Assembly (NCBI GenBank): GCA_038496445.1
Contig: JALMLS010000075.1
Coordinates: 248,001 to 312,000 of the forward strand
Reading direction: 5' to 3'
Origin: Trichosphaerium sp. ATCC 40318
Lineage: Eukaryota; Protista; Tubulinea
DNA: 64,000 nt
How positions within the stretch are numbered: the stretch's first letter is position 1; each line of letters begins with the position of its first letter. Shown one piece after another: positions 28,184 to 57,894 of this stretch. The notes below the pieces were generated by a model. That model was given only the letters and a program-made list of their open reading frames with translations, was not told the DNA's origin and did not search any database. A program made the translations under genes and the position numbers.

Positions 28184-29608
28184 ATGAGCAAACTCACTTT
28201 TGGATTTGAAGACAAGTTCGCACACGAAATAGCGAAATTATGTATTAGAACGTTCCTCGTGCATACGAGACAAATAAACAACAATCAACACTACATTATA
28301 GAAAAACGAAGGAGTTTAAAAGGTTTACGTTTCACCAACTACAACCAGATTTTCTACGGCTCTGAGGTCCCTAAAACTTGGAGCAAAGTAATGCAGTCTT
28401 TCAAAAGCGTTGATCCACAACAGACCAACAAGTTATACAAACAACCTGGCACAGAATTAAGTTCAAAACAAACTGAAGAGTTGCAGAGTCATATAAAATA
28501 CCTACAGGAAGAAAATCATTCTCTAAAAGAAAAATTGAAATCAACTCAAAGAGAGCTACAACAAGCAAGAAAAGAAGCTCTACAGGCGAAAAAAAATCAA
28601 AGAGAACTGAACGTCAAAATGGGTGAAGTTTCTACCAAACTACTTGACACTGAAAAGAAACACAAAGCCGCTTGTAACTACTTAAAAAACCAACGAGAAC
28701 AAGCCATTGAAACGCAAAAAACCAACCTAGCTTGGCAACAACATTGCGACATGTTGGCCAATACAGCTACAGCACAGGCAATTGAGATTCACAACCTTAA
28801 ACAGAAGATTTACAAAGATGCTGAACAATTCAAACAAACTGCAAAGGCAATACGAGAGCAGCACACGAGAGAAATGAAGGAGAAGATTGAAGAGCATAAG
28901 CGGTTTGTAGTTCGTTTGGGAGGAACTCAAAACGACGACAAAACAGCGCTGGCGTTGGAGGAGTTTGATGACTTTTGTGAAAATGTGACTGGTCTGTTTT
29001 TGGACAAATGGTGCGTCACATAATTGCCGTAAGTAGTCTAACAAGTTTGCACAGTGCTCAATTGTCTTGCAGCCCTTCTGAAAAGGATAATGTATACTCA
29101 ACACTTTTCAGTACGCTCATGATTGACTGGCCCACATTTGTTATCAACAACCGGATTACTTTCTCCTCAAATGATCTCAATAGTCCTGAAAGGTACGGCA
29201 TATTGACTCATTTTTGCAGCAACACTGATACAAATCAAGATCCACCCTATGCGCTACAATACTTTCAAATGAAGTAACTACGCTTTTTGAGCGCTACTAC
29301 GTGCGCATTGGTACGAACTTAAATAGTTTAAATATCTTATACATTTTGTAGATGACGACACTCTTGAAGAAATTAAGGATATTTGCTTTGCAGCCATCAA
29401 CCTCTATCACACAATGGAAACTACTATGAACCCTAAATTGTCATTCTTTAGACCACGCAAAACAGAGGCGTTCAACCCAGAAAGACAAATGCCGAGGCAA
29501 ACAAGAATTGTTCCTGTTGTAAGACAGCTCATGAGACCTGGTCTTGAGTGTGCTGTAACTAGGCGTGCTATAAGAAAAGCAGACGTCTTTATCGAACTAC
29601 CTCAATAA
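28184..29608 (+). CDS. Coiled-coil protein with GrpE/MIEAP-like C-terminal head, paralog G1
   Basis: Family motif EEHKRFVVRLGGTQNDD. Last exon PKLSFFRPRKTEAFNPERQ...VVRQLMRPGL...RAIRKADV. Exon structure shared with G2-G5. Confidence 0.8.
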
Positions 29609-29818
29609 ACACCTTAACGATTCCTCGCTTTGGCAAGTTGTTCTCTGAGTTTGTAGTTAGTCAAATACTACTTGTACTTGCTAAACGAATACAACACCTC
29701 TTTGGTGTTCTGGTGTACGGTTTGCAGTGAGCATATATTTTACCATTGGTGTAAAATGGATTCACAGGCGCAAGCAAACAATACTTCCTTGGACCTGCGA
29801 CACGTTCACTGAAGTTTT

Positions 29819-29829
29819 CCTCTGAGAGA
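29819..29829. promoter_or_regulatory. Palindrome variant CCTCTGAGAGA upstream of G2
   Basis: One mismatch to the motif, ending 31 bp before the ATG at 29861. Confidence 0.55.
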
Positions 29830-29860
29830 CATTGACCTATTTCTTACTTTTAACATTAAC

Positions 29861-31276
29861 ATGGCTAATAAGCACAGTAGCAAACTTACATTCCGATACA
29901 CAGCAGATTTCGCTGATACAATGGCACACAATGCGATTTGGATGCATTTATGCGCTAGAGGGTTTAATTATTCTACCTACCCAACAATTGAGCAGCATTC
30001 ATACTATCATTATTTATTTTCAACAGCAGAGGAGTTATTTACTGTGAACAGCGCTGAAAATGTATGGAAGTCAGTAAGCACTGCACATCAACGCAATGAT
30101 GGCTTTTGCCCACCAATACAAGTGAAGAGTATCCAAAACGCTTCGAAGAAAACCAACGTTAAACACCAACAGGAAGCTACAATAAACCGCTTACAACATG
30201 AACTCGCCCGTATCAAAAAAGAAAACATCAGGTTGAGGGAAGAAAACCAAAAAGCGAAAGTAACAGAGAGTGAGTTGCGTTCAAAACTCAAAACAATGCA
30301 AAGAAACAATGACATTAAAAAAAACCAAAGTCATAGTAAGTTGTTTATAGAGAAACGAGAGTGGGAAGCTGAGAAAAAAGGATTCAAAAGAGAACAGAAA
30401 CAAAACAAAGAAAAAATTGCTGACTTACAAGCTCACGTGACCAAAATTACGAAAGAGGCTAATACCAAAGTAAAGTCTCTACGAGAGCAGGGCAAAGATT
30501 GCGAGGCGAAGTACAAGAACGAACTTCAAAAGGCTTACGACACTTTGGAAGCAAAGAAAGAGGAACACAAGCGCTACATTGTTAAATTGTCCGGTACACA
30601 AAACGATGACGCTGTCCGAGACTTCTTAAACAACTATGACACTCTTGTTGATAATGTCTCTAATTTATACCTTGACGCTATGTACCACCATTTCTATATT
30701 TGTTTTACCATCTCTTTCTTACAACTGTTGTAGTCAATCTAAAGTGTTAACTGAAGAGGATAAAGTTCGTTTTTACTCAGAACTATATGGAGTTATAGCA
30801 ATAAACTGGTCAAATTTTGCGTTGAACAACAACATATTATTCAAGATAGAAGAACTAGCTAATACCCAGAAGTAAGTAGCTTATTCATTCCTGACAACTA
30901 ATTATCCTAGGCTTCAGACTGTTGTGGAAATAGTAAGCAATGAAATTTTGCTTGTATTCAAGATGTTCGATATTGGTATCGGTAAGAACTACATTGCTAC
31001 CTCGCTTATTGTAACGCGTAATTAGGTGACAGTTCTAAAGATATTAAAGACATTTCTTTGCAGGCAGTTTGGGCTTTACATACAATGGAAAGCAAGCTTA
31101 ACCCAAAAATCAAGTATTATCGTCCAAGACAAAAAGAACAATACAATCCAGCATCTCAACAATCTCGCCAAAATGCCATTGTACCTGTTGTAAAAGTGCT
31201 TATGCGACCAGGATTACAATGTGGTATCACTCAACGTATCATCAAGAAAGCAGATGTAATCACTCAACTACCTTAG
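29861..31276 (+). CDS. Coiled-coil protein with GrpE/MIEAP-like C-terminal head, paralog G2
   Basis: EEHKRYIVKLSGTQNDD, FYSELYGVIAINWS, final exon HTMESKLNPKIKYYRPRQKEQYNP...LMRPGL...RIIKKADV. Confidence 0.82.
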
Positions 31277-31450
31277 TACCTTGCACAAAATGCTTAAGTT
31301 TACACCAAAAATACTTTACTACAACAGTTTCACAGTCATGAGCGTCGTTTTAAAACAGGACTACAATAAACAAGACTGTCTCGTGCTCGTCATAATATGG
31401 TTTAGTTTATTCTGTTACACATAAAGCATCAAAACAGTTGTCCAATAAGT

Positions 31451-33526
31451 TCATTCCGATTCGCTATCATACTCAGATTCAGATTCAAATGCGCTTGCTG
31501 ATACAAAATTAGCTGTTGAATAAAAGAACTTTAGTCAACGTACTAGCGTATTCAATAGTTGCTTCATATTCACGTCCAGTGTCAACATCGCAAGCGGTTA
31601 TGTCAATAACCTCCCTTCCAAATCTCATACTTACCTCAACCATTCTGAATATTTTTCCAATTGTACTTTGAAGGCCAATACGTATTTTTCCGATTTTAAT
31701 GCATTCCCCAGTATCAACAAACTCAACATTTTTGGAAAAAGACTTGTAAAAGCGTATGGAAACCTCAGGTTGCATTGGAGACATCGGAGAAAATGTGTGT
31801 CTTATGACTTTATCGACACGCACCTCTTGCTGATAACTCACAAATTTACGGAAACCTTTAAAACGATAATAACCACCTGCAGCATAGTACTTTGGTTTTC
31901 CTTTGTCTCTAGATTCATTCCATGGCACAGCAACACGTACGCCATACGTGAACCGCATTATACGTGCTGCGATGATTGACAACTCAGCGCCTACTCTGTT
32001 GTTACCATTTTGTTTACAAGCGTCAACAATGTACCTATAAGAACTGCTCCATCAAGTGTAGCCTCACCAGGATATCTCGGTACAACTATTGATTTATTGA
32101 TTCGCTTGGAGAACTTTGAAATGATCCTGTTTTGTAACAGTAGTGAGGAGCCAAAGCCACCGACAATGAAGATGTAATCGAAGTTGCTTCCAGTTTTCTC
32201 CGCCATCGCTTTACATTGCTCCTCAACCAACTGCTCAATATTGTCCAATGTTGTTTCGAACAATAAACTAGCTTTAGGAACAATAATGGAACGTGAAGAT
32301 TTATCAAACGTGTCATTCTTGAACTGATCCAAAGAATCTAAGAACACGGAAGGTATCTAGTATAATTTTAGTTTTTCGGAAGTAAAAGCAAAAACTACAC
32401 GTACGTTATTGATAATTATACGCTTTGACTCATCTTTGACACGTATTTTAGCCTTTTGCCAGTCGGCTGACAATGACAACCATGCCTCAGGTTGTTTTTC
32501 CTTGAAGTCTGAGATCGTCTTTTCACCAAATTCGCTGACAAGAAATTTCTCAAAAGCAGCATCAATAACAGAGCTTCCATTGTGCCCTCCGGTGCCAACA
32601 GTAAGCTCAACGAGTTGATTATTTACCAACCTTGAAATAAGAATCAACTAATAAACACTCTGTAGTAGTACTTACCTATGAGCTACCAAATCTACAGTGC
32701 CGCCACCAGCGTCCAGAATAAGCAAGGTTTCGTTGTTTTGTAAACTTTTGCTTTGCCTCTCTCGCATATCAATACAATACCCAGCAGCAGCTTCAGGCTC
32801 TAGAACAAACCGAAAATTGCCTTTGTCACCCTTTTCATCAGATATCATTCCTACGGCCTTCAAGACATTAGAGTCTGAAAGTAGTACAATAAATCTGGAC
32901 ACGTACCTTTGCTGCTTTTATCATCGTAGCTTTTTCAGCGTCGCTCCAAATGGCTGGGATCGTCAAACACCACTGTATGATAAAATCCCATTCTCCTGAA
33001 CCGTAAGCGTTATCCCACTCAGATTCCAAGTCTCTCACCAACAGCTTGAGATAATCAACAATCACATCGAATGCCTTTTTCTGCTCTAATAAATTGTAAG
33101 GTTCTTGGAGCCTCCGTCTATTTTGTAGCACGTACGAGTCTTCGTAACATCATATACCATTCCACCAGGGTTTGTTTTTTCATAAATACCCATTTTGAAG
33201 TGCCTAATTTTGAAACGTTTGTATGCGAAAATTGTTGTTCAAAGCGCTTAAATATAGTTCTAGTACCTGTACAAAAACGTATTGGGGACTACAAGAGCAT
33301 CAGATCTCGCTTCAAAGCCCCACGAAACTATTTTTCCTTCCTCATCGTATAGAATCTCTGAGAGAGTTTTGACATAGGGCGTTGGCTGGCACTCCCAATT
33401 GTCCTTTTTAATAGGTTTCGAGTCATGACTGGGTTTGAAATACGCAAAACCACTGAAAGACGTTCCAAAGTCTATGGCTACTATCACGCGCTCGCGACGT
33501 TTGATTGCAGGAACAGTTGAAGCCAT
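31451..33526 (-). CDS. Divergent Hsp70, HSPA12-like (H-A), with short acidic tail
   Basis: VAIDFGTSFSGFAY, WCLTIPAIWSDAEKATM, LEPEAAAGYC, LDAGGGTVDL, VGGFGSS, RIMRFTYGV. Last exon TSAFESESEYDSESE*. No EEVD. Confidence 0.92.
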
Positions 33527-33571
33527 TCTTGTGTCGTTGAGGCACTGTACAACTTAAGTCACTAAGACATA

Positions 33572-33582
33572 TCTCTCAGAGA
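33572..33582. promoter_or_regulatory. Palindrome TCTCTCAGAGA in the 83-bp bidirectional promoter of H-A / G3
   Basis: Exact match between divergent ATGs at 33526 and 33610. Confidence 0.7.
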
Positions 33583-33609
33583 CTTTCAAGCATATTTTGA
33601 AGGGAAAAC

Positions 33610-34934
33610 ATGTCGTCAGGCTATTTGTACCAATACGATTTGAATTTCGCTAACGCAACTGCTAAATACATCATTTCGAACACCCTCTCTAAATCAAATA
33701 AAATGACCAGCGGTACTCGAATAGAACCAGCACCAAACGTTAGGGTCGCTGGCAAGCACTCTAAAGCAAAGAAACTATTTACGGAGAGTGACGCTGAACA
33801 AATACTCTACTCTCCTACCTATCGTAAGCGTGTGTCTAAATCTTCGACCCAAAGTGCTCAGCAAAAAGCTATTTGTGAAAAACAAACCCTTATAGACTCG
33901 CTCATACAGAATCAAGAACTGCTTACAAGAAAAATCGAGGAACTGAAAACAGAAAACAATAAACAAAGCAGAGAAGCACAAGCAATAATAACAACACAGA
34001 GGAACGAAATACAGTGCCTTAAAAAGCAACTTCAAACAAAACCAACACCACGTTTTTATAAGAGAGCTGATACCAAACGACAAATAAAAGCTTATACAAC
34101 CGAAATCAATACGCTCAAAGAAACAATTGCTATCAAAGAAAAGGAGAGAAAAGACCAAGTTCGTGCAAATCTTTTAAATATCGAACAAATTATTGAAGCC
34201 AATAAAGAAGATCATAAGCGATTTGTATTGAATCTATCAGGTACACAAAACAACGACAATGTACGAGAGTTTTTAGAACAATATGACCAGTTTGTTGGTG
34301 ATGTTACAGAACTCTTGCTTGACACAAAGTACAGTCCTATTTAGTCTACTCTATTTACTTATGATACTATAAGATACCCTGAGCATTTTCATGATGACGA
34401 TAAAGATGCATTCTACTCTAGAGTGTTTGGTGAACTTGCTATAAATTGGTCAACATTCTCCTTGAATCATGGCATACCGTATAAAATAGAAGAGCTAGCA
34501 GATGTTCAAAAGTACGATTTACTGTTTTTAAACCCCATACAACGCTGTACTAACGTTTAAATAAGGCAAGTCAAAGTGACAGAATACGTTAATAAATTAC
34601 TTTTTAAGCTGTTTGACACTTCTGGGATGTATCTCCGTACATCGAACTGTAAACCATTAGAATTCTGACTATTAACTTAGGCCCGGCGCTAGTAAATCTG
34701 CTGTATTCTATATCTTGGCAAGCTGTTAGTCTTGTACATACAATGGAAAGTAAACTGAACCCAAAAATCAAGTATTATCGTCCAAGACAAAAAGAACAAT
34801 ACAATCCAGCGTCTCAACAATCTCGCCAAAATGCCATTGTACCTGTTGTAAAAGTACTCATGCGACCAGGATTACAATGTGGTATCACTCAACGTATCAT
34901 CAAGAAAGCAGATGTAATCACTCAACTACCTTAG
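33610..34934 (+). CDS. Coiled-coil protein with GrpE/MIEAP-like C-terminal head, paralog G3
   Basis: EDHKRFVLNLSGTQNND, FYSRVFGELAINWS. Final 63 residues identical to G2. Confidence 0.82.
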
Positions 34935-35239
34935 AATAAACAACCTTTTTCTTTTGAATGAAGATGTGATACGTTTCAAGCGTTATGTTGGACTAGACAA
35001 TACTGACAATACAAAATCGGACAATAGATCGAACAATGGCAAGTAGCAAAGAATCTAAAATCCTTTTTCTTTTTGTTGTATTCCATTTTCTTTCAACATT
35101 GCATCTCACGAGTGTCTATAATGTAGAATAAATCCGCTCGTGTGGCTAGACCAGAGTAGCCAAAGACTGAGCGTCTTTCTACCAGAGGCGCCCTTCGATT
35201 GTATAGTCAACGTCAGTCCAATCTAACAAGTATGTAAAA

Positions 35240-35271
35240 TCTCTCAGAGATAAAAACAATTCTCTCAGAGA
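35240..35271. promoter_or_regulatory. Tandem palindromes TCTCTCAGAGA x2 upstream of Hsp70 H-B
   Basis: Exact matches at 35240-35250 and 35261-35271; ATG at 35308. Confidence 0.7.
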
Positions 35272-35307
35272 CTTTTCACTGTATTTTCAAAAACCAAGTT
35301 TGACTCA

Positions 35308-37185
35308 ATGGCAGCAACACCTCTTAAACGATCTGGTGTACGCTTTGTCGTAGGCCTAGACTTTGGAAACAGTAGTACTGGATGCGGCTTTATAGACTTG
35401 AGCGACAAACGTGAAGAGTTTCATGTATTAAACCTTTCTGGAACTCATGCAAGCTACGACAAGGATGTAAGTGCGATACTTCTCAAGAAGAATGAAACTG
35501 GATGGAAACTAGCAGCTTGTGGTATGGACGCGAAACTAGACTACATGAGTAACGAAGGAACCTCTACAACCCTTTTTTACACCGAGAGTATGAAAGCTCA
35601 TTTGGGGAAAGAAGTCTTCAACCACACTGCGACGACAGATACAATAGACGTTGAGTTTGTAATTTCTACGTACCTTGCTTGGATTAGAGAGACTGTTATG
35701 AAAGAGCTCGGAAAAGAAATGACGGGTGTCGATGCTCACGAACACGTTCGTTGGGTGTTCACTGTGCCAAACAATTACTCAGAAGAACAAATCGAAGCGT
35801 ATAAGAAGTGCATTATTAAGGTAAACCATTTTTTCTCTTTGGTTTGTTTGATTATGTATTGATTCATTGTTGTAGGCTGACTTCGTCGCGAAAGAGGGCG
35901 TTTCTGAAGAATTCTTGATGCTTGTTTCTGAAGCAGAGGCAGCTTCCGTTTATTGTCTGAAAGAGAAGGAGATTACACCAGAAGATGTCTTCTGTTTGTT
36001 GGTAATTGCTTCACTGCTTTAATGATTCTGACGTTATATTTTAGGACGCTGGTGGTGGCACGTGTGACATTACCACGTACAAAGTATCAAAAGGCTCAAA
36101 GCTAGAAGAACAAGCAGCAAAATCCGGTGAGAATATTGGATCAAAACTTCTTGATGAACGTTTCGTGTCACTTCTCAAGACGCGGTTTTCTGAAGAGACT
36201 ATTACGGATATTGCAAAAGAACACGGCGCTGCGTATTTAAAGTTCCTCTTTGCATGGATCACTGCAAAGGAGTCGCAGATAAACGGATACAAAGCAAGAA
36301 ACGTACCTCTTGGAGCACTAGTAGGGCCTCTTATTGAGAAAGGTGTATCAGATGAAGACGTGAATAGAGTGGCTTGTGTAAGAGTAAGTAACATCTTATA
36401 GTATCTACAAGTATTAATCGTACCAAGGTAACGGCAGAGAACATTCATACTATCTACGACAAAACATGTGATTCTGTTTGTACTTTTCTTCAAACTCATA
36501 TCGAGGAAGCTAGTAGCGATGGTATCTCTATTAAGGTACGATCTCATTGATACACATTAAACCGATAATATCGCTTACTATTTTAAAGCAAGTTTTCGTT
36601 GTCGGAGGCTTTGGAAGGAGCAAAATCCTTGCCGATAAGATAACCAAAAAGTTAGCTGTAATTGGGATATGCAAAGACCATATCAAGTTTCAAAAGTACT
36701 CTGGTCGTAGTGCGATGGCCGGAGCTGCGTTCATTGGTAAAGATCCTTCACTTGTACGTCTTAGAAAGATGGATAGAACGTACGGTATAGAAGCCTGTCA
36801 GGTGTATATGCCAGAGTTCCATGACGATTCTTTACCAAAAGTCATAAAAAACGGTGATTTCTACATTGAAAAGTTGTTTGAGTGTTTTGTTCAATACAAA
36901 CAACAGATTGAATTAAACCATACGGTGTCGAAGACATTTGACGTTCCTTCAGGCGCTTCTAGTCTCATTATTAAGCTCCTCAAGTCGTACAAAAAGAGCC
37001 CTATGTTGACGACAGACAGCAGTGTTGTTGAATGTGGACGTATTTTAGTACCTCTTTCAAGACCAACGCCAAAGACAATCACCATCGATTTCTGTCTTGG
37101 TAAAGTAGATATCTCAGTCAAAGCTTTTTTGAAAGACAGCGAACCTCAAGAAAGTAAAATTGGTTTCAACCCAAAATTCTGGTAG
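35308..37185 (+). CDS. Highly divergent Hsp70, HSPA12-like (H-B)
   Basis: VVGLDFGNSSTG, WVFTVPNNY, VSEAEAASVYC, LDAGGGTCDIT, VVGGFGRS, RKMDRTYGI. Confidence 0.85.
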
Positions 37186-37459
37186 TTCAACAATAAAAAA
37201 AAAAGATTCTTCTTTAAGTTGTTCTTTACTATCCATTGCATCTCTTTTTTTTTTTACTAAATGCTCCATATGTTCTACGCCTAGAAACATTTACGAACTC
37301 AAAAACAGTTCAAACCGCTGACAGTTTCCAAGCGGAGCAAAACAATGAGTTGGAAAGTAGTTTTGCACGTGCTTCCAAAACGTTATTGAAAATTTTATTT
37401 ATTGATCCGGCGCATTGCAATACTCTGCAAGTTCTCATTGGCGCTTTTTTCACCTTAGT

Positions 37460-37885: not shown

Positions 37886-38083
37886 CACGTGACTATTCTG
37901 AAAAATGGCGAAATTGCCAAAACAGACTTAATCAGTACGACTTACGGCAATCAAACCTTGCACTTAAATAGCTTCCTTTGGTAAATCGAACTTTTTGTTT
38001 GGTATTTACAACGTTACAGCCATGTCTGTAGGCATCGGACATTGTTTTCTATTTACAAGATTTTTTGTTGTGTACAGATTAAT

Positions 38084-39254
38084 TTACATAGCGGCACATC
38101 CTCGGAATTTTTTTCTTGGTTTTTTGTGCATATCAAGTACACTATCTACTGCCTCTCCAAAAACTACGCAAACAAAACATCAAATCACGTCGTTACAATT
38201 TTTTAATGGAAGTACCTTCTTTTACGCCCCATCCATTCTGAGCGCTAGTTTCAACGTAACTGTGTGCCTGGGTAATGTTGATTAGAATTTCGAAAATTAT
38301 CCAAAAACAAAAATAGTTTACTCGTATTTCCTTGGCTAAAAGAATGCCTTTTATCTGTGATATACAGTCTATAGAATCTTTCACTCGTGTATCAAGCTTT
38401 GTACCAACTAATATAATGGGTGTATCAGGACAGTAACGTCGTAACTCCAAATGCCACTAACAAACGAGTGAATTTCTCTTCGAAACACAGAAAATAAAAT
38501 CCAGTTTAATTTCTTTGAAAGGACAAATGCTCTATTAATACTATACCAGTGCGTATATTGTACCTTTTGTTCTATATTTTCATATGATTTCCAGTCATCT
38601 ATAGCAAAACAAAGCAAAAACACGTGCTACAGAGTTCCATCAATAAGAATTCAAATAAAAATACAAAAAAAAACCCATACTGCTCCAACATAGTCTAAGG
38701 GCCTCAATCTATCGTATTGCTCAAGACCTACAAAACGCTTATCATTACTTAACGCCTACAATACCAAATACTGTATTCCATGGTAGTTACAGCGATTTAA
38801 CGCACCTGCAGTATCCCATAGACCTTGATACAGGTTTAACAATGAAGTAAAAATAAAATAAAAAGAGTACCTAATTCCACGTGTATCGCATCAGAGCACG
38901 TGAGATTTACACTATTCACGCATTAATGCAAACAAAAAAAACAAAAGGAAAATAGAAAATACAAATTATTACATACACAAATGCGTCAAGGAGTGTAGGG
39001 ACATATGTATCCGAGAAGTGATCTGAAAACACGTTTAGAAAAAAAAATATCAAAAAAAAAAACTTAAACTCAATTAAAGCACGTGTTGTCGCCTGGTAAT
39101 AACGTACTTTTTGTGTATCTTATTAATAAAGACGTCTTACCTAAACGTTGAATTAAGTATGTATCATGGGTCCACTATTGTTTAATGTACCAACTTGACC
39201 GTCACCCACTATCACAAGCTTAATACATCTGCTGTTGGTACTTTGTTTTGACAT
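38084..39254 (-). CDS. Rac/Rho-family small GTPase with Leu at the Q61-equivalent position
   Basis: [46 protein letters not shown], polybasic tail and CAAM prenylation motif. Confidence 0.92.
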
Positions 39255-39389
39255 TTAACAAACTTTATTTTCCTACGCACAAAAGTCAACATTAGTATCT
39301 TGTAAATTACTGTTGCAAGAAAATACTAGCCGGAGAAATTAGGTCACTACTGAAAAACTACTAGAACCATCGAAACGAGCTCGTAACGG

Positions 39390-39520
39390 ATTGTGACGCT
39401 TTGGCGAGACTAGATTGTTTCGGTCTTGGGCGAAAGTACTTGATTTTCGGATTCAGTTTACTTTCCATTGTATCTAGCAAGACTGACTTGGAAGAAATAG
39501 TGTACACAGTCAACGTCACA
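39390..39520 (-). pseudogene. Orphan fragment of a G4/G5-type GrpE-like last exon
   Basis: cggtcttgggcgaaagtacttgattttcggattcagtttactttccattgtat is nearly identical to 51381-51433 (TMESKLNPKIKYFRPRPK), then degenerates with a deletion. Confidence 0.85.
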
Positions 39521-39587
39521 TTTTAGAACAGATTTTTATTAATTTGACAAGGAAGGCAACTGATTTGTATTCGTTGTTTTCAACCAA

Positions 39588-40947
39588 CTAATATGTCCTT
39601 GAGTCTTCTTCGTCTCCAACTTGATCTTTGATTGATTGATTTACTACCGTTGAAATTGATAGCTGCGATTTGTCAATCTCTTTACCATAATCTTGTACTG
39701 AGAATGCGAATATACAAAGAATAGATACACCAACAAGTTCAAAAGAAAGCAGTAAATTATTCATTAGTTCAGCACGTAACTCTGCTACAAATAGCACTGT
39801 ATCTGTTATAACTTTCTGTCCTACAAGGATATTTAATACCATCTCTTGGAATGCACCGAATATTATAATCAGTTTTATAGCCAAGAACTTTAATGTCATG
39901 CGGTGATTCTTAAGAACTTTATGTGTTGCTCTGAATAGAATAAATAATCCATACATTGCAAAGTTAAGTGATACAATATTGATTATAGTTAGGTATGCTA
40001 TTGGTGTATCGAACCCTGTATCTGATACCGAAGCGTCTGTATTTTGGTCTACAATCAGGGTTGCTAACGAGATTGTTGGTCTTATCACGACATATTGTAT
40101 GACAAGCCAGTAACCTATTGAGTAACTTCAGAATTAGCATGAAAACAAATGTATCAAAGCTTCTCTTTTGCACGTACAAATCTTTAAAGATCTCGCTGTG
40201 AAAGGTCTCTTTCCAAGACAAAAGTAAACACAGCAGCATGGAGCGGTGGCATAATATCTGCAGAAGGAGTAAGTAAACAGTCATATGCAAAAAACCCCAA
40301 AGAATAACTACCTGCGCAACTTTACTCTTTGTAAGATATTCAAACACCCTTCCGGCCCACCGAAGGTGTACACTACAAAACAATTTAATAAAGAGCGAAT
40401 ATCTTGTATCAAAATATTCTACCTATAAGCTGAAAGAACCACACAAGTAAAATTGCTTCATATGCAATTCTCACAAGACTTAGCGTCAGTATTGAATTGT
40501 ACACAAAGACCGATAAGAAAGCCAACAAACTGTACACCTAACATAATGGCGTAAACAATATGAATAGACTTGCAAACAACTCAAAGTACACGTGCTAGAT
40601 ATGACGGCACGTTTTTTCATCACGTGATTAAAAAAAAGTTGGGTATTTTTACTAGTGTTCGCGTACTGGTATGAAAGACACGATTTTTAGGTTCAGAGTG
40701 CGGACAGTAGATGATTTACCGACTCTGAAATGTCTTAAAGTTATGTACGCCCATACAGAGAGGCTAATCACAGTGCATATTGATGAAAATAGCGCAACGA
40801 ACACAATCTAAGCGAAATAAGAAATACCAAAAAAAAGGTGTCCCCACGTTAGCGACTAAAACAGCTTTTAACACTTACTTTACCCTTATCGCGTCCTAAT
40901 AAATCTGAAAAGGATGGGTATTTATGTTGAGTGCTGTTTGGTTCCAT
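39588..40947 (-). CDS. OST-alpha / TMEM184-like (Solute_trans_a) membrane protein
   Basis: Multi-TM protein; SLNFAMYGLFILFRATHKVL...KFLAIKLIIIFGAFQ...NNLLLSFE...FAFS. Confidence 0.8.
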
Positions 40948-45135: not shown

Positions 45136-47647
45136 GGTAAAAAAACAGGGCAAGAGGATGTGAGGGGGCTTTATTTGAAAGCACTTTAGCGACAAATGCA
45201 CTTAGTTACAGGTACTACAGTCGCCATTGAGAGGCAGTACAACACTTGCAGTTGTACTAGGATGGATATCGGCATTACCTTTCCAACAGAAATTAAAGGA
45301 GTTGTAGATTTGTACTTCTGTGAAAGCCCAACCATCGTTAGCGAATACTCTCATCTCAACACCTTGAAGTGTCTTGTCGGTATTCTTTGCAGGTGCCATC
45401 ATGTAGAATAGATCGAGAGCGTCAGATTGAAACTCGTTGAGGCGGGGATCGACAATAGCATCGCTGTATGAAGAATTGGTTCCGTCAGTGTACACATATC
45501 GGTACTTGATTGGAGCATTTGTGCCACTGGATTGACCGTTGTCTGTCTTTGTCATTATCATTGTGTATTCGTTCACCACTTTCTCGTATGTGTCTCCAGA
45601 ACTGTGAGGGTTCGAACAGTTTGTCATGAAGAATAGGTTACACACACTGTTGGAGTAACTCGTGTAGTATCCACAGCGATCGTCTGCATTGCATAGTTGT
45701 TCACATTGAGTCTTCGTTACTGAGGTATCTGGAGGGAAGGAACATTCTCCTGAACCGCCAACCCAATCGCAGTGCGTTACTGTTGATCCAGGAACAGAAC
45801 CATTGCAGTACATAAATTGACCGGCATACATGTCTTTGCGACAGCCAGAACAAGTATTCTGAGCGTTGAGAATGGCTTTGTAGTTGAAGGCCAAGGCAAG
45901 TGAGATGCAGAGATAGAGTAGAATCGATGAATAGTTCATGATGAAAGGTACTTGTACGTTGAAGTAGAGTTGTTGTTTGTTGTTTGAAGGTTATTCGTAA
46001 ATGATGAGTCTTGACTTAAAGAGCGATTGCTAAGACATGTTAGCCTAAAACACGTGTGAACGGTAAACAAAAAGTGAAGCAAAAAGGCACCATGCTGCTA
46101 AAAAAAATACCAACAACAGTACAAACATATTTGGGATTAAAACTACGCGTTAACAGTAAACATTTATGAAAAAACCAGGAAATGAAAAAAAGAATACACG
46201 TGTTCGTCATGGTTATTGTGAACTGTGTTTTTTTGCCCTTTAAATAAACCAAGCGTTATTTAAACCTTAAAAATGAAGACTGGGGATTATTTTACATCAG
46301 TTCGGTTTGGTTTTGTTTTTATTGTTCAAAACGTTCACTGAACTATTATTTGTTTTGAAATAATTTCGCTCTTTTGCCGGCCCGTTCCACTTCTATGAAT
46401 AATGTGTTTCAGGTTTTGATATCCAAAGTTTGAGAAAGACGGAAATCTCAAAATAAACATTTCTTCAAAAACCACCTCTGTTTTTCGTCAAACTAAAAAA
46501 ATTCAGAAGGGTCTTCGTGCTACACTTTAACTTACAGTTTCTTGTTCAGTCTGGGTTCAATGTGCACAGAAACTTTGGTCTGCATCCTTAGGATCGCAGT
46601 ATTTTGGAAAGCGCTTGCCAAGGCATAGTGCTGTTTCTCGACAACAACTCCCAGTCTCAAAAGCTGCTTCCAGTATTCATCCAAATTTTCTTGATGAGAT
46701 TGCCTGCTACCATTTACAGAATGCCACGGTGTTTGTCGATTGCTCTGTGTACAATCTAAGTTGCAGTATTTGTAGGTATGTTTCAGAATGTTCTCATACG
46801 AGATTGTCTGCTCCATTAGCAAAACGCAGCTGGCGCTACCATTTATAGAACACCACAGGTGTTAGCCAAGTTGCCCTGTGTACAATCTAACTTGCAGTAT
46901 TTGTAGTTATGTTTTCAGAATGCTTGAAAGATACAAGTTCGCTCTCACTGTTACAAGACATGCTTTGATTTGCAGCATCAAATGAAGTACCATGCAGTTT
47001 TCGTAAAATTTAGTTTTTTTTTCCGACACTCTGAAGCTAGACCGCTGTAGTTGTGTAGTAGCTGTACCCCCAATAAACTTACTAATTCACGACACCAATC
47101 TGTGATTCATAGTGAGACTACAAACTAACAAAATCAAAATAGTCGCTTTCAATTGCTTGATGACACTTAACACAAGCGTCTCTTTAAACTTGCTTTTCTT
47201 TCCATCAGATACTAACAACAGTGCATGTTGATAGGTACAATGCACGCTAATACAACATAGTAATAGGTATCACAAAAGTGATCTCAACTACAACACTTTT
47301 TGATTGATTCACTCGCTGCCACATAGAGTTGATGCTACTGATCACCCTGTATGACATGTTTACATGTCGGTTTATCAATGTGTTATTTCTCAAGAAATCG
47401 CTTTACAAGTTTTATGGTCAGTCACGTGAACGCTTGTCATCTGAAAGCAGACTATTTTGTAGGTAGTTTGTTTTTTATTGTTGATTGCGTAGTACAGTAT
47501 TTCTTGTATTTGCAATAAAATATAAACACAGTGAAACGTACAACCTCATGGCTCTCACTATAGCTACGAAGATGTTCTCTTTCACACCGAAAATAATACT
47601 ACAAATTGTGAAGTTAGGATTTAATTTATTGAATTTATTTTCTCGCT
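45136..47647 (-). repeat. Right arm of the ~2.5-kb inverted duplication
   Basis: Reverse complement of 22772-25298. Confidence 0.95.
45202..45939 (-). CDS. Secreted PAN/apple-like + PLAT-like protein, copy 2
   Basis: Near-identical to 24489-25235 with small in-frame indels and substitutions. ORF intact. Confidence 0.8.
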   Translation of the reverse strand: MNYSSILLYLCISLALAFNYKAILNAQNTCSGCRKDMYAGQFMYCNGSVPGSTVTHCDWVGGSGECSFPPDTSVTKTQCEQLCNADDRCGYYTSYSNSVCNLFFMTNCSNPHSSGDTYEKVVNEYTMIMTKTDNGQSSGTNAPIKYRYVYTDGTNSSYSDAIVDPRLNEFQSDALDLFYMMAPAKNTDKTLQGVEMRVFANDGWAFTEVQIYNSFNFCWKGNADIHPSTTASVVLPLNGDCSTCN

Positions 47648-48934: not shown

Positions 48935-49049
48935 CGTCAGTGCTACTTAATAAGCAGTTCTTTTAACCTATATCTACAACGTACATAACAGTTTCTACTC
49001 GTGGAAAGTAATAAAAGTGCTTTGGAGACAAGTAAAAAAAAAGTGGCAA

Positions 49050-49297: not shown

Positions 49298-49559
49298 CTG
49301 ATATTCCAACTGCATGTTGCTGCAGGTTCAGGTTACAGGACTTAGTTGGTCGACTGTTAAGTCTCCAATTGAACGTGTAACACACAATGGACAACCTCCC
49401 CGTAGAGTTGATTTTAACAATCCTTGATTTCATTACGATACCCTCAAATCTCCAAACTACGAAAAAAACCAGCAGATTATTCGAATCGCTTACAAAAGAG
49501 ACTAAACTGTACAAAGTGCGATTTTTTATATCTAATATCACGTTTTAACCATTTTAGAG

Positions 49560-50822
49560 TCTTTCTGCCGTTTATACAGTTAAAGCCGTGACAGGCAGCC
49601 ATGAAAAAGGTCTCATCGATGGCAAGTATCTCTTTCCACGTATCAAAGCTTTTTAAACAAACAACCTAGGAGACGCGAAAACTGCCCGTTTTATGATGCA
49701 CGAGGCATAGCGTTTGACAAGCAAGGCGATGTACGCGTTTACTTGTAACATAGTGATAATCAGGCAAAATATTTATTTAGATTGTTTTAGATGATATAAT
49801 TACTGACAATTCAAATCATCTACTAAGAAAGTTGTGTATGTTTACAGGGATTGTAAGCACTGTTGAGTGTACAAAGAGTAAAGTGGAATTTCCACATGAT
49901 GTAGCAGTTGATAGTGATGGTAACATCTTAATTGCAGATGCTTCACATAGTGCACGTGTTTATTTTTTTTCCTTTTTTTTCTATTTTTTTTTTGTCTCTA
50001 CTCATTCCCATGAGACACTGTCTTCACATGTAAAACTAAAATGGTATTTGGTAATGTGTTGGCTTTAAAATTTTACTTTTAATGGTGGTTGTGCTGTTGC
50101 ACAATACATTTACTAGCGCATGAAAAAGAATGTGGCTCGTCTTGTTTAACTTGGCCCCACACCAATCCAAGCATATTTTTTGGACTTGTGGTATACACAG
50201 TTGATATTAATACTTTCTTTAGCGTATTATGTACATTGAAGCTGCTACTGGAGAGTTAAAGTTGTTACATAAGGAAAGACAAGGTGGTTGGCTTAGAAGT
50301 GTTGCTATTTCTCCTGAAGGGTATATTTGTTATGCAAACAGCACTAGAAACTGGGTACGCGTTAGTTGTGGTATATCAAGTGCATCAACACGAAATCCGC
50401 CACCTTTGGGGCAAATTGAGTTAGCAAATGCAAGGAATGTTGTGACAGACGATAACGGAAATATCTATGTTTCAAACTTTGATACTTTGGGTGTTGTCCC
50501 TCACAATGATAAACTACGTTTATATCCATTTAAGCTAGATACCTTAAGTCGATTATGCTATGTCAATGGTAAGACGAAAACCTAAATTAAATCAAATATT
50601 TTGTACTGTGATTACTTGTTCTAATTTTTTTTCATTGAAGGAAGTTTGATTTTTGGCAGTAGTAATAGGATGTACAGACTGTTTGTTGAAAATGAGGAGC
50701 TGATTGAAATAAACCTAGAAAACATAAACAATATGGTGAACATTAACAGTATTGTATATCACGACAAGATGCTGTACTTTTCGCATGACAACAGAATAAG
50801 CAAAATAGATATTATTTTGTAA
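49560..50822 (+). CDS. NHL-repeat (beta-propeller) protein, possibly pseudogenised
   Basis: DG..DAKTARF/DARGIAFDKQGD, ITDNSNHLLRK, FPHDVAVDSDGNILIAD. Apparent 1-nt frameshift in the T run at ~49690. Start not found. Confidence 0.65.
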
Positions 50823-51236
50823 AGCAAAAATTATGCGTAACCTTATGAAATAAAATTTATGCTCTGTTGCAAAGCATCGGTATCCATTATAGTAGATTGG
50901 TTATGCCTTGGTTGTCTATTGGACGAAATTTACACCCGATTCGTCTTTATGTGTATGAAAAGTAAGTTGTTTATTGCTATGAATATCACAAATTAAAGCT
51001 ATCATTTTCAAGTACTCGAGACATACCCATTCTAGTTAGCCATTATGTTCCTATCACTATGAAACACCTTATCTTAAACCGGTCATCGATATTGTTAGAC
51101 ATCCAAATAACTGTCAGTAGACTTGTCACCTAATTGTGCACGCACTCAGTCGCCATAAAAAGTCATAATAATCGTTTGCTCGCTTTGTCAGTACATGACC
51201 ACAAACATTCCACTGTTTGTAAATACAATATTTATT

Positions 51237-52752
51237 CTAAGGTAGTACAGTGATTACATCTGCTTGCTTGATGATACGTTGAGTAATACCACATTGTAGT
51301 CCTGGACGCATGAGAAGCTTTACAATAGGTACAATCGCATTTTGACGAGATTGGTGAGATGCTGGATTGTATTGTTCTTTCGGTCTTGGACGAAAGTACT
51401 TGATTTTCGGATTCAGTTTACTTTCCATTGTATGTAGCAATGATACTGCCTGCGAAGAAATATTGCTTATTGTCAATTCCATGTTTTCGTCTGTTTAAAA
51501 ATTAATATCATTACATTGAATAGTGGCTTCGTACCTTTCTCAATCTGGTATGTAGTAAGAACTTTTGATACTGATGCATAGACAAGTAAAGATATGTACT
51601 GGTGCCTGTTAAGAAACTGTTAAGAAAGTAAGAGATAAAAAGCAGACTGATAAGCGTACTTTCGAGGATCATCTAGCTCTTCAAGTTTAAAAGGTATCTT
51701 ATTATTGAGCGAAAATGTTTGCCAATTAATAGCAAGAACGTCAAACAATGCTGAGTAAAAAGAATCACTCTTGTCAGTAGGTAAGTGAGCTGAACCCCTA
51801 AATAAAAGGTTAAAAACGTGTTAGAGGTTTACTCACGTGGCATCCAGAAACAGATTAGTAACATTGTCTACAAACAATTCATAGTCATGCAAAAAGTCTC
51901 TGACGCTATCGTCGTATTGTGTTCCCGATAGCTTGATCATAAAGCGTTTGTGTTCCTCTTTTTTTTTCTCTAAGGCATCGTAGAACTTACGTTGCACAGT
52001 TTGAAGCGCATTCTCATGATACTCCTTGTTTTTCTTGAGCTCTTCTTTCAAACACGTGATTTTTTCTTCAGCTTCTGTTTTCGCTTTTCTTTCCTTGTTG
52101 ATAGCTTCAGTACGTACGCGTTGAAGATCTTTAGAGTGACGATATTTAATTGTAATCAACTCTTCTCTCAGAGACTTGACGTGAGTGCTTCTCGGTTTTT
52201 CCTTTGCAATTCTCTTTTCTCTTTGGCCTGCTTCGCTTTTAGTTTTTTGAAACCTTCCTTTGCTTGTTTACGCTGATTCAGTCTGTTGTCTTTCTCTTCT
52301 TTCAATTGTTGTTTAAGTTCTTCAATTGTAGCGCCTACAGTTTTCTCCAGGGTGCTTTTGATATCCAGTTCTTTGTTCAACGCCTTGTTTTCTTCTTTGG
52401 CTACACGTAAAAGAGTGTTTAAATCCTCCTGCTCGCTTACAAGCGAAAATATTAGGCGAGTTTTTTCTTGGAGCAAAGATTTTTCTTCTTTCGGTACTCG
52501 TATATCTCCAACTTGTACGGAGGCTGCACGGGCACGTTTTTGAACTATTACTGATCCCCAAACCTCGGTAACTTGTTTATCAGTTGAAAAAAATCGATCA
52601 GATGGCTTTGATTGTCCAAATATGGTGTAGTTTGGCGCAGGGGTAATGTTGATGCTTTTTGAGGTGTTTGTCCTGGTTTGTGCTAGATAGACTGAAAGAG
52701 CCTTTTTAACAATTGATTTAGCGAAGCGTTGGCTATATTCATACTTTTCCAT
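51237..52752 (-). CDS. Coiled-coil protein with GrpE/MIEAP-like C-terminal head, paralog G4
   Basis: MEKYEYSQRFAK...; EEHKRFMIKLSGTQYDD; last exon PKIKYFRPRPKEQYNPASHQ...LMRPGL...RIIKQADV. Confidence 0.82.
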
Positions 52753-52791
52753 GGCGTTTGTTTTCAAAAAAAAAAAAGAAGAATCTACTTG

Positions 52792-52934
52792 TCTCTGAGA
52801 CGTTTTCTTCACTGAACTTTGATGTTACAGTACACCTTTTCTAAACCGATAAATAATTCGTTTCGGTTTACATAAAATGGTACATTGTAGATTCTTGCAT
52901 AGATAACTGTTCCCAACATATAATCTCTGAGAGA
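52792..52934. promoter_or_regulatory. Bidirectional promoter G4 / H-C with TCTCTGAGA(CG) (52792) and TCTCTGAGAGA (52924-52934)
   Basis: Partial and exact motif copies between divergent ATGs at 52752 and 53058. Confidence 0.6.
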
Positions 52935-53057
52935 TAATACCTTAAAAAAGCTATGTACTCTCTCCCAGTCTATTTTGAAGCAACTGTACTATAACATGAC
53001 TGAACCAAAAAAGGTTGTAAGACTTAACAACTGATATTAATCTACCAAATATTACAA

Positions 53058-55983
53058 ATGGCAACTGCTACTCCGGCTATAAAGCCCCGTGAACGTATTG
53101 TCGTAGCTGTAGACTTTGGTACTTCGTTTAGTGGGTTCGCATACTTTAAACCTGGGCATGATACCAAACCGATTAAAAAAGACAATTGGGACTGTCAACC
53201 AACACCATACGTAAAGACCCTCTCAGAGATACTTTACGATGAGGGTGGAAAAATTGTTTCTTGGGGATACGAAGCTAGATCTGACTCTCTTATAGTCCCA
53301 AATACGTTTTTATACAGGTACTGAACTACATAACAAGAATACCCCTTCTTCCAGAGAAATCTCTGTTAATTGCTACCTAGGCACTTTAAGATGGGAATTT
53401 ACGAAAAAACGAACCCTACTGGCATGGTCTATGATGCTACAAACACTCGTAAGTTGTCTACCTTTGATTCGAATTTATGTGTACATCTTTTCAAGGATTA
53501 ACTTTTGATTTAGAACAGAAAAAGGCTATTGATGTGATTGTAGACTACCTCAAGTTGCTTGTACAAGACTTAGAGTCTGAATGGGATAACGCATATGGTG
53601 TTGGGCAATGGGACTTTATAATCCAATGGTGTCTAACAATTCCAGCTATTTGGAGTGATGCCGAAAAAGCGGCAATGATAGAAGCTGCAAAGGTACCTAA
53701 AAGCAACTACCCATTCTGTCACGTGCTAATTGTCTTGGAGGCTGTTGGCATGATATGTGATTCTAACGGTGGTATGAGTAACTTTAGGTTTGCTCTAGAG
53801 CCTGAAGCTGCAGCTGGGTATTGTATCGACATGCGCGAGAGACAAGGACGAAAACTGCGAAACAATGAAACTCTTCTCGTTTTAGATGCTGGTGGAGGAA
53901 CAGTCGATTTGGCTGCTCATAGGTAAGCGGTAGTTACTGTCGGTGTGATACTGATATTCCAATGTAGGTTGGTACAAAACCAACTTGTTGAACTCACTGT
54001 TGGAACCGGTGGTCATTTTGGAGGCTCCAAAATCGATGAAGCGTTCGAACTATTTCTGTCTGACACCTTTGGTGAACCATTGATCAAACAATTCAAGGAG
54101 GACCAACCTGAGGCGTGGCTATCATTTTTAGCGAGCTGGCAAAAGGCTAAAATACGCGTAAAAGATGAATCAAAAAGGATAATCATTAACGTAAGTGAAT
54201 TTTCGGAAAATCTTTCAACATGTAAGTTTTTTTTTAGGTTCCGCCTGCAATGTTCGCTTTGTTGAGTAAGCTTGAGAAGAGTAGTGTATTTGACAAATCT
54301 TCTCGTTCTGTTATCATTCCTAAAGCGAGTGTATTGTTTAAAAGCACTCTAGACAACATCGAAAAGTTGGTTGAAGAGCAATGTAAAGCTATGAAAGAGA
54401 AAACTGGAAATAACTTCGATTACATCTTCATTGTCGGCGGTTTCGGGTCTTCTGTTCTTCTGCAGAACGTAATTAAATCCAAGTTTTGTTCACGTATCAA
54501 TAAGGCAATTGTTGTTCCGAGATACCCTGGCGAAGCTACACTCGATGGTGCAGTGTTAATTGGTAATCACATTTTTTTAATTGTTGCTCGGCTTTGTTAC
54601 TGACCTTTATACCAGGAGCGGATAAGTCGATTATTGCAGCACGTATTATGCGGTACACCTATGGAGTAGAATACACACGTAGTTTTGATGTTTCGAGCGA
54701 TGATATAGCGAGGAAGAAACGCTTTCCAGGCCGTAGTGAAGATGTTTGTGTACGCTGTTTTGATACTTTTGTAAAGTATCAAGATGAAGTCCACGTGGAT
54801 AATGTGATCAAACGGAAGTATCAAGCGGTTTCCCCAAAGCAAGGCATCATTCAAATCAACTTCTTCAAGTCATTTAGCAAATCAGTTAAGTACGTTGATG
54901 CTGGAGAATGTGTTAAGCTCGGTGCTATATCTGTCGATATTAAGAGTACTATTGGGCAAGAAAACCGAGAAGTTGAAGTCCAAATGTCGTTTGGAAGAGA
55001 GCTCATAACTATTACTGCTGTAGATATCAATACCAAAAAAGAATATGATGCGAGTATAAAGTACTCAAGTGCGTCAACATGCACAGAAAACACACGTGTC
55101 GCTTTGTTTTTTGATGTTGTTTATAGCGAGTCTCTTTGAAACAGGTGAATTAGAAGAACCGGAAAACAAGGCTATATCTTTAGACGTATGTTTTGTTATT
55201 GACGTTACCGGTAGCATGGGAAGATATATTGATGGTGTAAAGAAAAATGTTCCGATAATCGTTAAAAACATAGTTGAAGCATGCTCTTGCTTTGGTCATT
55301 CTGCTACAATTCGAATGGCTCTTGCTATGTACCGAGATTTTGTAGATGGTGCTGATAGACTCTCAGGAATTGATTTCTGTCAGTATAGTCCCGACAAGAA
55401 TGAAGACGAATTGAAAAAGGTAGTAGTTGTTGATTCATTCATTCTCACAATATTGTAAAGGTTATTTCGAAGTTGAAACATACCTTCGCTGAAGGCGGTG
55501 GCTCTCCTCCTGAAGAAGATGTGATTGGTGGTTTAGACTACGCCCTATCTTATTCATGGACAGCTGACAAGAAAGTGATGTTTCTCATTGGTGACGCACC
55601 TTGTCATAATCCAAAGGTTAGTATAAACCAGTAAGAAAGAAACCTAATGCTCTTTATAAGTACTCTGGGAGGACATCCGGAGATACGCATCCTGATGCCT
55701 ATACCACTGGGTTTGTTAATCCAGAAAATGTTTTGTCGCACATTAGAAATCAAGGTACATATGACTATCCTTTTTGTCTTAACTTTCGATAGAAATTGAG
55801 CTATTCTTCATAAAGTTGAATGAGTCTACCAACTACATGATAAACTACTTTAAGGGTATTTATGATACAGACGAGCGTAAATTAGAAACCATGAATATGG
55901 TCAATGCCACAAGCAGTGTCGAGATTAATAGGCTGCTTGGTGAACACGTGACAGCAACACTGGTTGCAACTCTGTTTAAATAG
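53058..55983 (+). CDS. Divergent HSPA12-like Hsp70 fused to C-terminal vWA domain (H-C)
   Basis: Close paralog of H-A. After the intron at which H-A enters its tail, the frame continues into LDVCFVIDVTGSM (MIDAS), YRDF, EGGG..PEEDVIGGL, FLIGDAPCH. Confidence 0.88.
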
Positions 55984-56365
55984 TAGCCAGCTCAACTAAT
56001 TACAAATAAATCCCACACTGAAAGTAAGACCTTTGTTGTATTAAGCTGTAGTATTATACGTCTGTAAAACATGTGGGACATATTGATTGTGTTGCTCTTT
56101 GTAACGAGTATAAACAGAATAAAATTATACTTGACAGCAACATGATCTTGTTTTTGTATTATACAATAACTTGTGATAATCGTCTTACACAACTGTTGTC
56201 TAGCAATAAACGCTTGGCGGTGGAACCAAAAGCCAACAATATTTCACTTGAAATCCATTTGTACTACACAACAACTCATTCTTTTCGTCAAGGCATAACA
56301 ACTCAATAGTAATTTTCGGCTTTATTCTTTTGGAGCATTTTCGTCGAATGGTTAATTAAGTACAC

Positions 56366-57894
56366 TCATTTTTGAATGGCACCTTCCCCAGAATTATTTT
56401 GGGCAACAATGGTGGCCGGTACTCGTGGAGTTAATCCGTCTCCTGGTAGTATAGTGATTACATCTGCTTGCTTGATGATACGTTGAGTAATACCACATTG
56501 TAGTCCTGGACGCATGAGAAGCTTTACAATAGGCACAATGGCATTTTGACGAGATTGGTGAGATGCTGGATTGTATTGTTCTTTCGGTCTTGGACGAAAG
56601 TACTTGATTTTCGGGTTCAGTTTACTTTCCATTGTATGTAGCAATGACACAGCCTGCGAAGAAATCTCATGTATCGTTCTTTTAGTTTCCTCGTCTAAGA
56701 ATCCATCAGTAACATAAATAGTGCAAGACTGCTTACCAAGTATGAAGCTAAACGACTTAAACAGCTCGAAAACCGAGTCTCGTACAAGCTGTGATACAGT
56801 CTCAAGCCTTTGTATTACGTTAGATGTGATAGCGTTAAATCAACTTACTTTTTGGGGTCGTCAAGGTCTTCCACTTTGTACTGGAGCTTGTTGTTAAGAG
56901 CGAAGGTTGACCAATTGATAGCAAGAACGCCAAACAACTGCGAATAAAAGAGACTGCTCTCTTCATCTGCGATTGATGTCACCGACCTACAAGTTATTAA
57001 TATAACAAAGTCCACATGGAGAAAAAACCTAAACCCATACGTTACATCAAGATAGAGATTAGATACATTGTCAAAGAACGTTTCATATTGCTCCAAAAAA
57101 TCGCGAACACTGTCATCGTTTTGAGTACCAGAGAGCTTGACCATAAAGCGTTTGTTCTCCTCTTTCTTGGTCTCCAAAATATCATTAAACTTCTCTTGGG
57201 CTGTTTGTAGTTCTTTCGTATGCGACAGATGGTCTTTTTTGATTTTATCTCTGAGAGACTTTACTTCTTTTTGGGCTTCTATTTTTTCTTTTCGTAGCTT
57301 GTTGACTGCGTCACCGTGCTGTTTCTCTAGCGTTGTAATACGATCTTTCAAAGCCTTTTGGTCTCTCTTGTTGGCACGTTGTTCGCTTCCAAGTTTGTTT
57401 TTTTCGGCTTCCCATGCTCTCTTCGCGGTTTGGTGGGTAGCTCTGAGTTCTCGGAGTTTACTGGAATGGTCTGAGTCATTCTTTCGAATTTTTGATCGCA
57501 GGTCGCTCTCTATCGCCTTTGACTTAGCTTTCTCTTCCTTTAGCTTGATGTTCTCTTTCTTGACGCTTGCTAGTTCATCTTTTAACGCTTTTAGAGTAGC
57601 TTGGAGATCGTCTTGTTCTTTTTTTTGGTTTTGTAGATGTTGGTCCCATGTTTGTTGTTGATGCTCGCTTGGTTTGCTACCTTTGCAGACGGTATTCCAT
57701 ACTTTCTTTACGTCATCTTTTGTAAACAACAAGCCAGACGGACCAAAGATCGAGAAATATGGCGCAGCGCTAATTTTAGCGTAGTGAGCGTGATTGAAGC
57801 CGCTCGTACGCAAATAATTCCAAATTACAGTCTCCGCTATACCACGAGCAAATCCAGCCGAGTAAACGTAACTATCAGTACTAATTTCAGCCAT
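56366..57894 (-). CDS. Coiled-coil protein with GrpE/MIEAP-like C-terminal head, paralog G5
   Basis: EENKRFMVKLSGTQNDD, FYSQLFGVLAINWS. Head nearly identical to G4 plus a ~25-aa extension. Confidence 0.82.

Follow-up and report, generated by a model that had tools for sequence, protein, structure and literature searches.

Three atypical Hsp70 genes (H-A, H-B and H-C) are interleaved with five paralogous coiled-coil genes (G1 to G5) in a 64,000-nucleotide stretch of the amoeba Trichosphaerium sp. ATCC 40318 (assembly GCA_038496445.1, contig JALMLS010000075.1, positions 248,001–312,000 of the forward strand), hereafter the window, and the adjacency of the two gene types is conserved in three lineages, namely the window and two lineages represented by metagenome contigs. 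G1–G5 constitute a family without earlier description. We propose that their products are coiled-coil proteins that serve the neighbouring Hsp70 ATPases, which are lid-less and HSPA12-like, as dedicated partners, either co-chaperones or adaptors, a reading that we consider about evenly balanced between right and wrong. Conserved adjacency of unrelated genes is rare in eukaryotes and usually signals a working pair. HSPA12-type Hsp70s are not known to have cofactors, and their mechanism is poorly understood.

The G paralogues were located by motif scanning and by tblastn with the spliced G5 protein, and a beam search, with G5 and H-C as guides, yielded the splice models of both gene types. The window has a GC content of 38%, and its introns are short (about 40–65 nt) and of the GT..AG type. 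G1 (28184–29608, plus strand), the most divergent paralogue, is a 430-residue homology-guided model supported by the family motifs, with introns at 29011–29054, 29193–29239 and 29311–29351. It is followed by G2 (29861–31276, plus; 421 residues; introns 30682–30733, 30872–30910 and 30982–31040), likewise homology-guided, which converges with H-A (about 31450–33526, minus; about 568 residues, with seven introns at positions matching those of H-C). Between the start codons of H-A and G3 lies a divergent intergenic region of 83 bp (33527–33609). G3 (33610–34934, plus; 393 residues; modelled introns 34329–34373, 34512–34565 and 34649–34692) is followed downstream on the same strand by H-B, a divergent Hsp70-like paralogue of about 550 residues (35308–37188). 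In the distal part of the cluster, G4 (51237–52752, minus), recognized by motif scanning and tblastn, is divergent from H-C across 305 bp (52753–53057), and H-C (53058–55983, plus; 807 residues in 11 exons, Hsp70-like with a C-terminal vWA domain) is convergent with G5 (56366–57894, minus; 463 residues; introns 56987–57040, 56808–56848 and 56695–56736). H-A/G3 and G4/H-C are thus head-to-head pairs, and G2/H-A and H-C/G5 are tail-to-tail pairs. The first-pass annotation of this DNA had placed three Hsp70 genes among five G paralogues with the same head-to-head spacings; motif scanning, tblastn and hhalign comparison with DnaK bear out the former, and the gene coordinates agree with the latter.

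The pairing recurs outside the window. Scanning metagenomes with a profile of an Hsp70 exon yielded four contigs, which were then searched by tblastn with the spliced G and H proteins. Two of them, L008 and L009, represent the same intron-poor organism in two samples and encode an Hsp70-vWA open reading frame (ORF) 41% identical to H-C. On the opposite strand, 166 bp from the stop codon of this ORF and convergent with it, lies a gene for a 438-residue coiled-coil protein with a G head at its end, beyond which comes a second G paralogue of 352 residues; this lineage repeats the exact convergent Hsp70-vWA/G layout of H-C and G5. On contig L002, a G-type last exon is followed after 210 bp by an Hsp70 N-terminus 52% identical to both H-A and H-C. 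The G heads of these contigs are about 30–36% identical to those of the window. The pairing is present on every contig with sufficient flank, the remaining contigs lacking the flank needed to judge it. The first-pass annotation had counted recurrence of the linkage elsewhere in this or related genomes among the points that bear on its reading, and we found it on L008/L009 and on L002. A giant-virus origin of L008/L009 was considered and rejected as unsupported, the scans of viral contigs having returned no match with either a G homologue or the Hsp70 profile as query.

Recurrence bears directly on a simpler explanation of the locus, in which adjacency is a by-product of the segmental duplication of functionally unrelated neighbours. 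The window does show such duplication: the block G3/H-A/G2 mirrors G4/H-C/G5, and therefore one G-H-G unit was duplicated in inverted orientation, a process that is also displayed by a 2.5-kb inverted duplicate nearby (22772–25292 versus 47647–45140). However, in the metagenome lineages the pairing is found with Hsp70s only 40–52% identical, with G heads as distant as noted above and in other orientations, and the G and H genes have been kept intact and expressed. Because the pairing occurs in two further lineages, a mere duplication artefact is argued against; this explanation is already weakened by the metagenome contigs and we regard it as very unlikely.

The genes are transcribed as separate units. 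Spliced RNA contigs from two public runs, placed on positions 51901–57900, show all ten H-C introns as GT..AG joints and all three G5 introns as GT..AG (CT..AC) joints, and they bridge the fusion intron (55069–55126) that joins the Hsp70 part of H-C to the vWA domain. One RNA contig carries a loose end resembling a template-switch oligo just before 53039, which therefore likely marks the cap site and 5' end of the H-C mRNA, 19 nt upstream of the ATG. H-C and G5 give rise to separate mRNAs, since none of the RNA contigs spans both genes. The operon-like module envisaged by the first-pass annotation is accordingly rejected in favour of separate divergent and convergent transcription units. A contig from a Joint Genome Institute (JGI) data set, L003, is a transcript of G3 from which introns 1 and 2 have been removed and in which intron 3 is retained. 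G4 shows a frame change in an A-rich stretch near 52190–52200 where no intron is possible, its third exon is not recognizable, and no RNA contig from the two public runs covers 51901–52900; for these reasons it is probably a pseudogene, the alternative being that the frameshift is an assembly error. The intergenic regions contain no dimer or trimer of the heat-shock element (HSE), and classical heat-shock control was rejected as a supported feature of the locus. Within H-C and G5 (54526–57085), 14 single-base differences separate the two RNA data sets from the window; the RNA was probably derived from different strains belonging to this species or to a very close one.

By sequence comparison, the H proteins belong to the Hsp70 superfamily (PF00012). 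A profile of H-A, H-B and H-C aligned with residues 4–509 of Escherichia coli DnaK over 466 columns (hhalign probability 98.2%); the lid lies outside the alignment, which takes in the nucleotide-binding (ATPase) domain and the beta substrate-binding region. Spliced H-A scored 29.6 bits against E. coli DnaK in phmmer, and the phosphate-2 exon matched only Hsp70s in the PDB, at the correct position; single H exons are too short for Pfam detection. H-A and H-C are 71% identical, and H-B is 27% identical to either and carries the ATPase motifs DFG...G, DAGGGT.D and VGGFG. The motifs of the H proteins resemble those of HSPA12, the putative subfamily of these genes. Like HSPA12-type Hsp70s, the H proteins combine a nucleotide-binding domain bearing insertions with a beta-rich C-terminal region and possess no helical lid, but H-C and its L009 homologue differ from them in bearing a C-terminal vWA domain. 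H-A ends just past the intron at which H-C runs on into this domain, and the 150 residues preceding the vWA domain of H-C fall among Hsp70 clusters in a feature search. The vWA assignment is weak in H-C (VWA_4, 22.4 bits against a cut-off of 27, from one exon) and close to threshold in the L009 homologue (Pfam VWA, 22.7 against 23.8), which passes the HSP70 cut-off (26.5 bits against 20.6). At the D-x-[ST]-x-S position typical of the metal-ion-dependent adhesion site (MIDAS), H-C reads DVTGS and the L009 protein reads DISSS. A literature search for HSPA12 and vWA revealed no described Hsp70-vWA fusion among the matches listed.

The G proteins share a common design. In G5, an N-terminal domain is followed by a coiled coil of about 180 residues, a helical block and a C-terminal head. 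The LSGTQ(N/Y)(N/D)D block and the head (...NP..(H/Q)Q...LMRPGL...(K/Q)ADV) are present in all five paralogues. The INW(S/Q) helix, which the first-pass annotation had listed with them as common to the family, is found in G2–G5 and reads IDW in G1. The same annotation had treated the N-terminal domains as variable; the first 70 residues or so of G1–G5 form one diverged homologous domain, rather than unrelated ones, with the pattern [YF]x[YF]xxxFAxxhA...VW. In the N-terminal part, G2 is nearest to G5 (38% amino acid identity). This domain is missing from the metagenome homologues.

The family is exceedingly rare in protein databases. Pfam searches, which used exon pieces and contiguous full-length homologues, assigned no family to any G piece. 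Word-based searches of 5.8 billion clustered proteins with exons 1–2 of G5, whole or reduced to the helical block, gave no match. With the head exon as query, exhaustive HMMER profile searching of 1.84 billion representatives yielded three matches; a fourth came from a profile search of a larger protein set. All four are fragments: P0001 is part of G3, and the other three (P0002, P0003 and P0004) are short genes called on metagenome contigs of soil type. A scan of metagenome DNA with the head profile, tblastn of the head against phage records and an Atlas feature search with the intron-containing G5 tail returned, respectively, no match, no match and no usable match. G-type C-terminal domains do occur in another context, since two soil metagenome sequences, L001 (140–1377) and L004 (47–1682), encode in one gene a Ser/Thr-kinase-like domain (NCBIfam E value 1e-19, catalytic-loop motif HSNLKPSN), a coiled coil and the G C-terminal domain. 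The reading frame changes at an identical site in L001 and L004, where a short intron probably lies.

The two ends of the G genes have evolved in different ways. The last exon, which encodes the head, is 97% identical in DNA between G4 and G5, 93% between G2 and G3 and 86–88% across the pairs, whereas DNA outside the last exon is about 70% identical or shows no detectable identity. Among G2, G3 and G5, the number of synonymous substitutions per synonymous site (dS) in the last exon is 0.26–0.56, and the ratio of non-synonymous to synonymous rates (dN/dS) is about 0.2, whereas across the regions of these genes that encode the N-terminal part, the coiled coil and the helices, synonymous sites are saturated (proportion of synonymous differences, pS, at least 0.74). 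This difference indicates that the shared head exon is homogenized by gene conversion and held by purifying selection, while the N-terminal part is free to diverge. G1 stands outside the exchange of head exons. A uniform head on an otherwise diverging protein fits the pattern expected of adaptors with one common docking partner.

In the proposed mechanism, each G protein would comprise a diverging N-terminal domain and a long, probably dimerizing coiled coil that carries a constant C-terminal module, in which about four helices precede a beta-rich head of some 55 residues. The head would dock on the Hsp70 ATPase, the dimeric coiled coil would act as a spacer, and the variable end would pick the client or the site of action. 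The physical interaction of G with Hsp70, an exchange activity and the adaptor role are each inferred. Some observations weigh against this proposal. In L001 and L004 the G tail shares a gene with a kinase-like domain, so it is not exclusively a module of Hsp70 neighbours. The repeats of the pairing within the window all derive from the one duplicated G-H-G unit, so they are not independent of each other.

The most specific layer of the proposal, and the least secure, is that the G head could be a GrpE-like beta-domain that would act as a nucleotide exchange factor, which on the sequence comparisons available we hold to be tentative and rather doubtful. GrpE (PF01025) is the nucleotide exchange factor of DnaK, and its gene stands beside dnaK in bacteria. 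The predicted layout of G parallels that of GrpE, with a long, probably dimerizing helix, a helical block and a small C-terminal beta head, and a G gene likewise adjoins an Hsp70 gene in the window, in L008/L009 and in L002. Several features set G apart: its coiled coil extends over about 180 residues and is preceded by an extra N-terminal domain, it has PG[LI] where GrpE has KGY and no counterpart of the inserted hairpin of GrpE, its putative partner is a lid-less atypical Hsp70 rather than DnaK, and the G and H genes are eukaryotic, intron-bearing and separately transcribed.

Profile comparison gives suggestive evidence of a similarity between the G head and the GrpE beta-domain. An alignment of the G domain from spliced proteins and contiguous homologues was compared by hhalign with a GrpE alignment that combined the E. 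coli protein with a varied set of plasmid-borne and enterobacterial sequences. The comparison with 17 diverse GrpEs scored 30.1 over 50 columns (P 0.0012, probability 19.7%), matching columns 149–201 of the G domain profile, the whole head, to residues 138–192 of E. coli GrpE, the whole beta-domain. The signal strengthened as the GrpE set became more diverse, P being 0.6 with near-identical GrpEs, 0.002 with 12 sequences and 0.0012 with 17. The motifs held in common are [FY]-[DN]-P-x-x-H and R-x-h-[RK]-[PA]-A-x-V. Control comparisons reached at most 17.6 in 200 column shuffles, 15.0 with the reversed profile, 22.1 in 150 shuffles of blocks of four and 26.0 in 150 shuffles of blocks of eight. 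Since none of the 500 shuffles reached 30.1, the likeness exceeds chance by these controls. However, because block-of-eight shuffles reach 26, two short motifs (F/Y-N-P-x-x-H and R-x-h-x-[RK]-A-x-V) account for much of the score, and the hhalign probability is only 20%. Other searches also speak against GrpE ancestry. No Pfam GrpE match was found by hmmscan, at E values up to 1–10, on the G exon pieces, the L001 ORF, P0003 or two contiguous full-length homologues, and two profile searches of PDB sequences retrieved no GrpE. AlphaFold2 models had low confidence: the predicted local distance difference test (pLDDT) score was 52 when the last exon was modelled and 46 with the contiguous homologue P0004, in whose model the only visible order consists of helices followed by short strands. 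Because of this low confidence, the Foldseek search of the PDB and the Atlas shape search with the P0004 model are treated as noise, and we make no claim as to fold. The GrpE fold advanced in the first-pass annotation is therefore not established, the profile–profile similarity being suggestive only.

That annotation had also suggested a relation to MIEAP, of which a single lead survives. When the contiguous G tail of L008 was used in a language-model (Atlas) feature search, unnamed fungal clusters ranked first (0.92 and 0.91) and a mollusc MIEAP cluster, the nearest named family, scored 0.88, scores below 0.9 being rated by the tool as a lead only. One may accordingly picture G as a distant relative of the MIEAP domain, engaged in condensate or organelle quality control and merely using, or co-regulated with, the nearby Hsp70s, with no GrpE ancestry. 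The same feature search points this way, since eight of the ten best family-bearing matches share a family or clan with the top one and the only such family listed near the top is MIEAP; so does the layout, as MIEAP/SPATA18 is also a coiled-coil protein with a C-terminal alpha+beta domain of about 200 residues. However, Pfam MIEAP (PF16026) matches no G piece or full-length homologue at E values up to 1–10, G showing no HMMER-detectable similarity to it; no MIEAP protein is present among the G head matches in the exhaustive search of 1.84 billion representatives; and the score of the MIEAP cluster lies under the tool's own line. We consider this explanation quite unlikely. The tail of human MIEAP shows a similar F-N-x-x-x-Y ... 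P-A-L ... K-G-x-A-V pattern. Literature searches turned up, among the papers covered, none that connects MIEAP with HSPA12-type Hsp70s or with GrpE, or HSPA12-type Hsp70s with GrpE. In a broader version that unites both leads, the G head would be a true GrpE-type beta-domain that has diverged strongly, animal MIEAP would belong to the same superfamily, and G/MIEAP-like proteins would serve across eukaryotes as dedicated exchange factors or adaptors of HSPA12-type Hsp70s, their variable ends aiming the chaperone at particular targets or organelles. This version appears unlikely to us.

A serious alternative, which overlaps our preferred explanation and is partly compatible with the partner reading, is that G and H are not a pair of chaperone and exchange factor but the two components of a stress or immune (conflict) module. 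The Hsp70-vWA protein would then work as an ATP-driven sensor or effector, gripping a ligand via its vWA and beta domains, and G would be a coiled-coil scaffold or regulator, fused to a kinase in some lineages, that signals or assembles a complex. The vWA fusion in two lineages is consistent with this, as are the fusion of G tails to a Ser/Thr-kinase-like domain, the rapid turnover of paralogues (a pseudogene and relics), the diversifying N-terminal parts and the lack of heat-shock elements between the genes. A comparable domain set is grouped in E. coli K-12, where the yegD-yegI-pphC-yegL cluster (L007, 2147674–2153128) encodes an Hsp70-like protein, a kinase, a phosphatase and a vWA protein; the Hsp70-like ATPase, vWA and Ser/Thr kinase are the domains also found in the amoeba and metagenome G/H loci. 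The parallel is an analogy only, and the E. coli cluster differs in having no coiled-coil protein of the G type. Several points count against a conflict module, however: there is no PADLOC defence-family match, the H profile is far nearer to DnaK than to YegD (hhalign probabilities of 98% and 60%), and the GrpE-like signal in the head is left unexplained. We regard it as possible but, on present evidence, improbable.

The surroundings of the G and H genes record further duplication and loss. A relic of the vWA domain (27707–27820, minus) was detected by tblastn with spliced H-C (E value 3e-7; 55% identity to H-C residues 619–660). A sixth G last exon, recognized by tblastn (76% identity to G5 residues 361–393) and in the frame listing, survives as a relic truncated after ...NPKIKYFRPRPK (39364–39522, minus) and sits between a multi-pass membrane protein gene (39588–40383, minus) and a Rho/Rac-like small GTPase gene (about 38196–39254, minus). 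The duplication, decay and domain fusion reported by the first-pass annotation are all real, the decay being seen in G4 and these two relics and the fusion in the vWA domain of H-C. The copies of the 2.5-kb inverted duplicate are 94.8% identical and carry a gene for a secreted Cys-rich protein (24489–25235, plus, and 45202–45939, minus). An ORF at 25946–26425 (minus) encodes a coiled-coil protein whose start, YLYSEANFCEEVINATL, is faintly like the G N-terminal motif (blastp E value 0.07), a likeness that may be due to chance.

Although expressed, the G family may be regarded as protein ‘dark matter’, a set of 5.8 billion clustered proteins having given four fragment matches to it. For HSPA12-type Hsp70s it offers a concrete and testable candidate partner, whose gene has remained adjacent to theirs in distant microbial eukaryotes. 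Should the connection with GrpE, and perhaps with MIEAP, prove true, the oldest Hsp70 cofactor fold would be extended into a new eukaryotic context, and a function would also be suggested for a human p53-target protein family.

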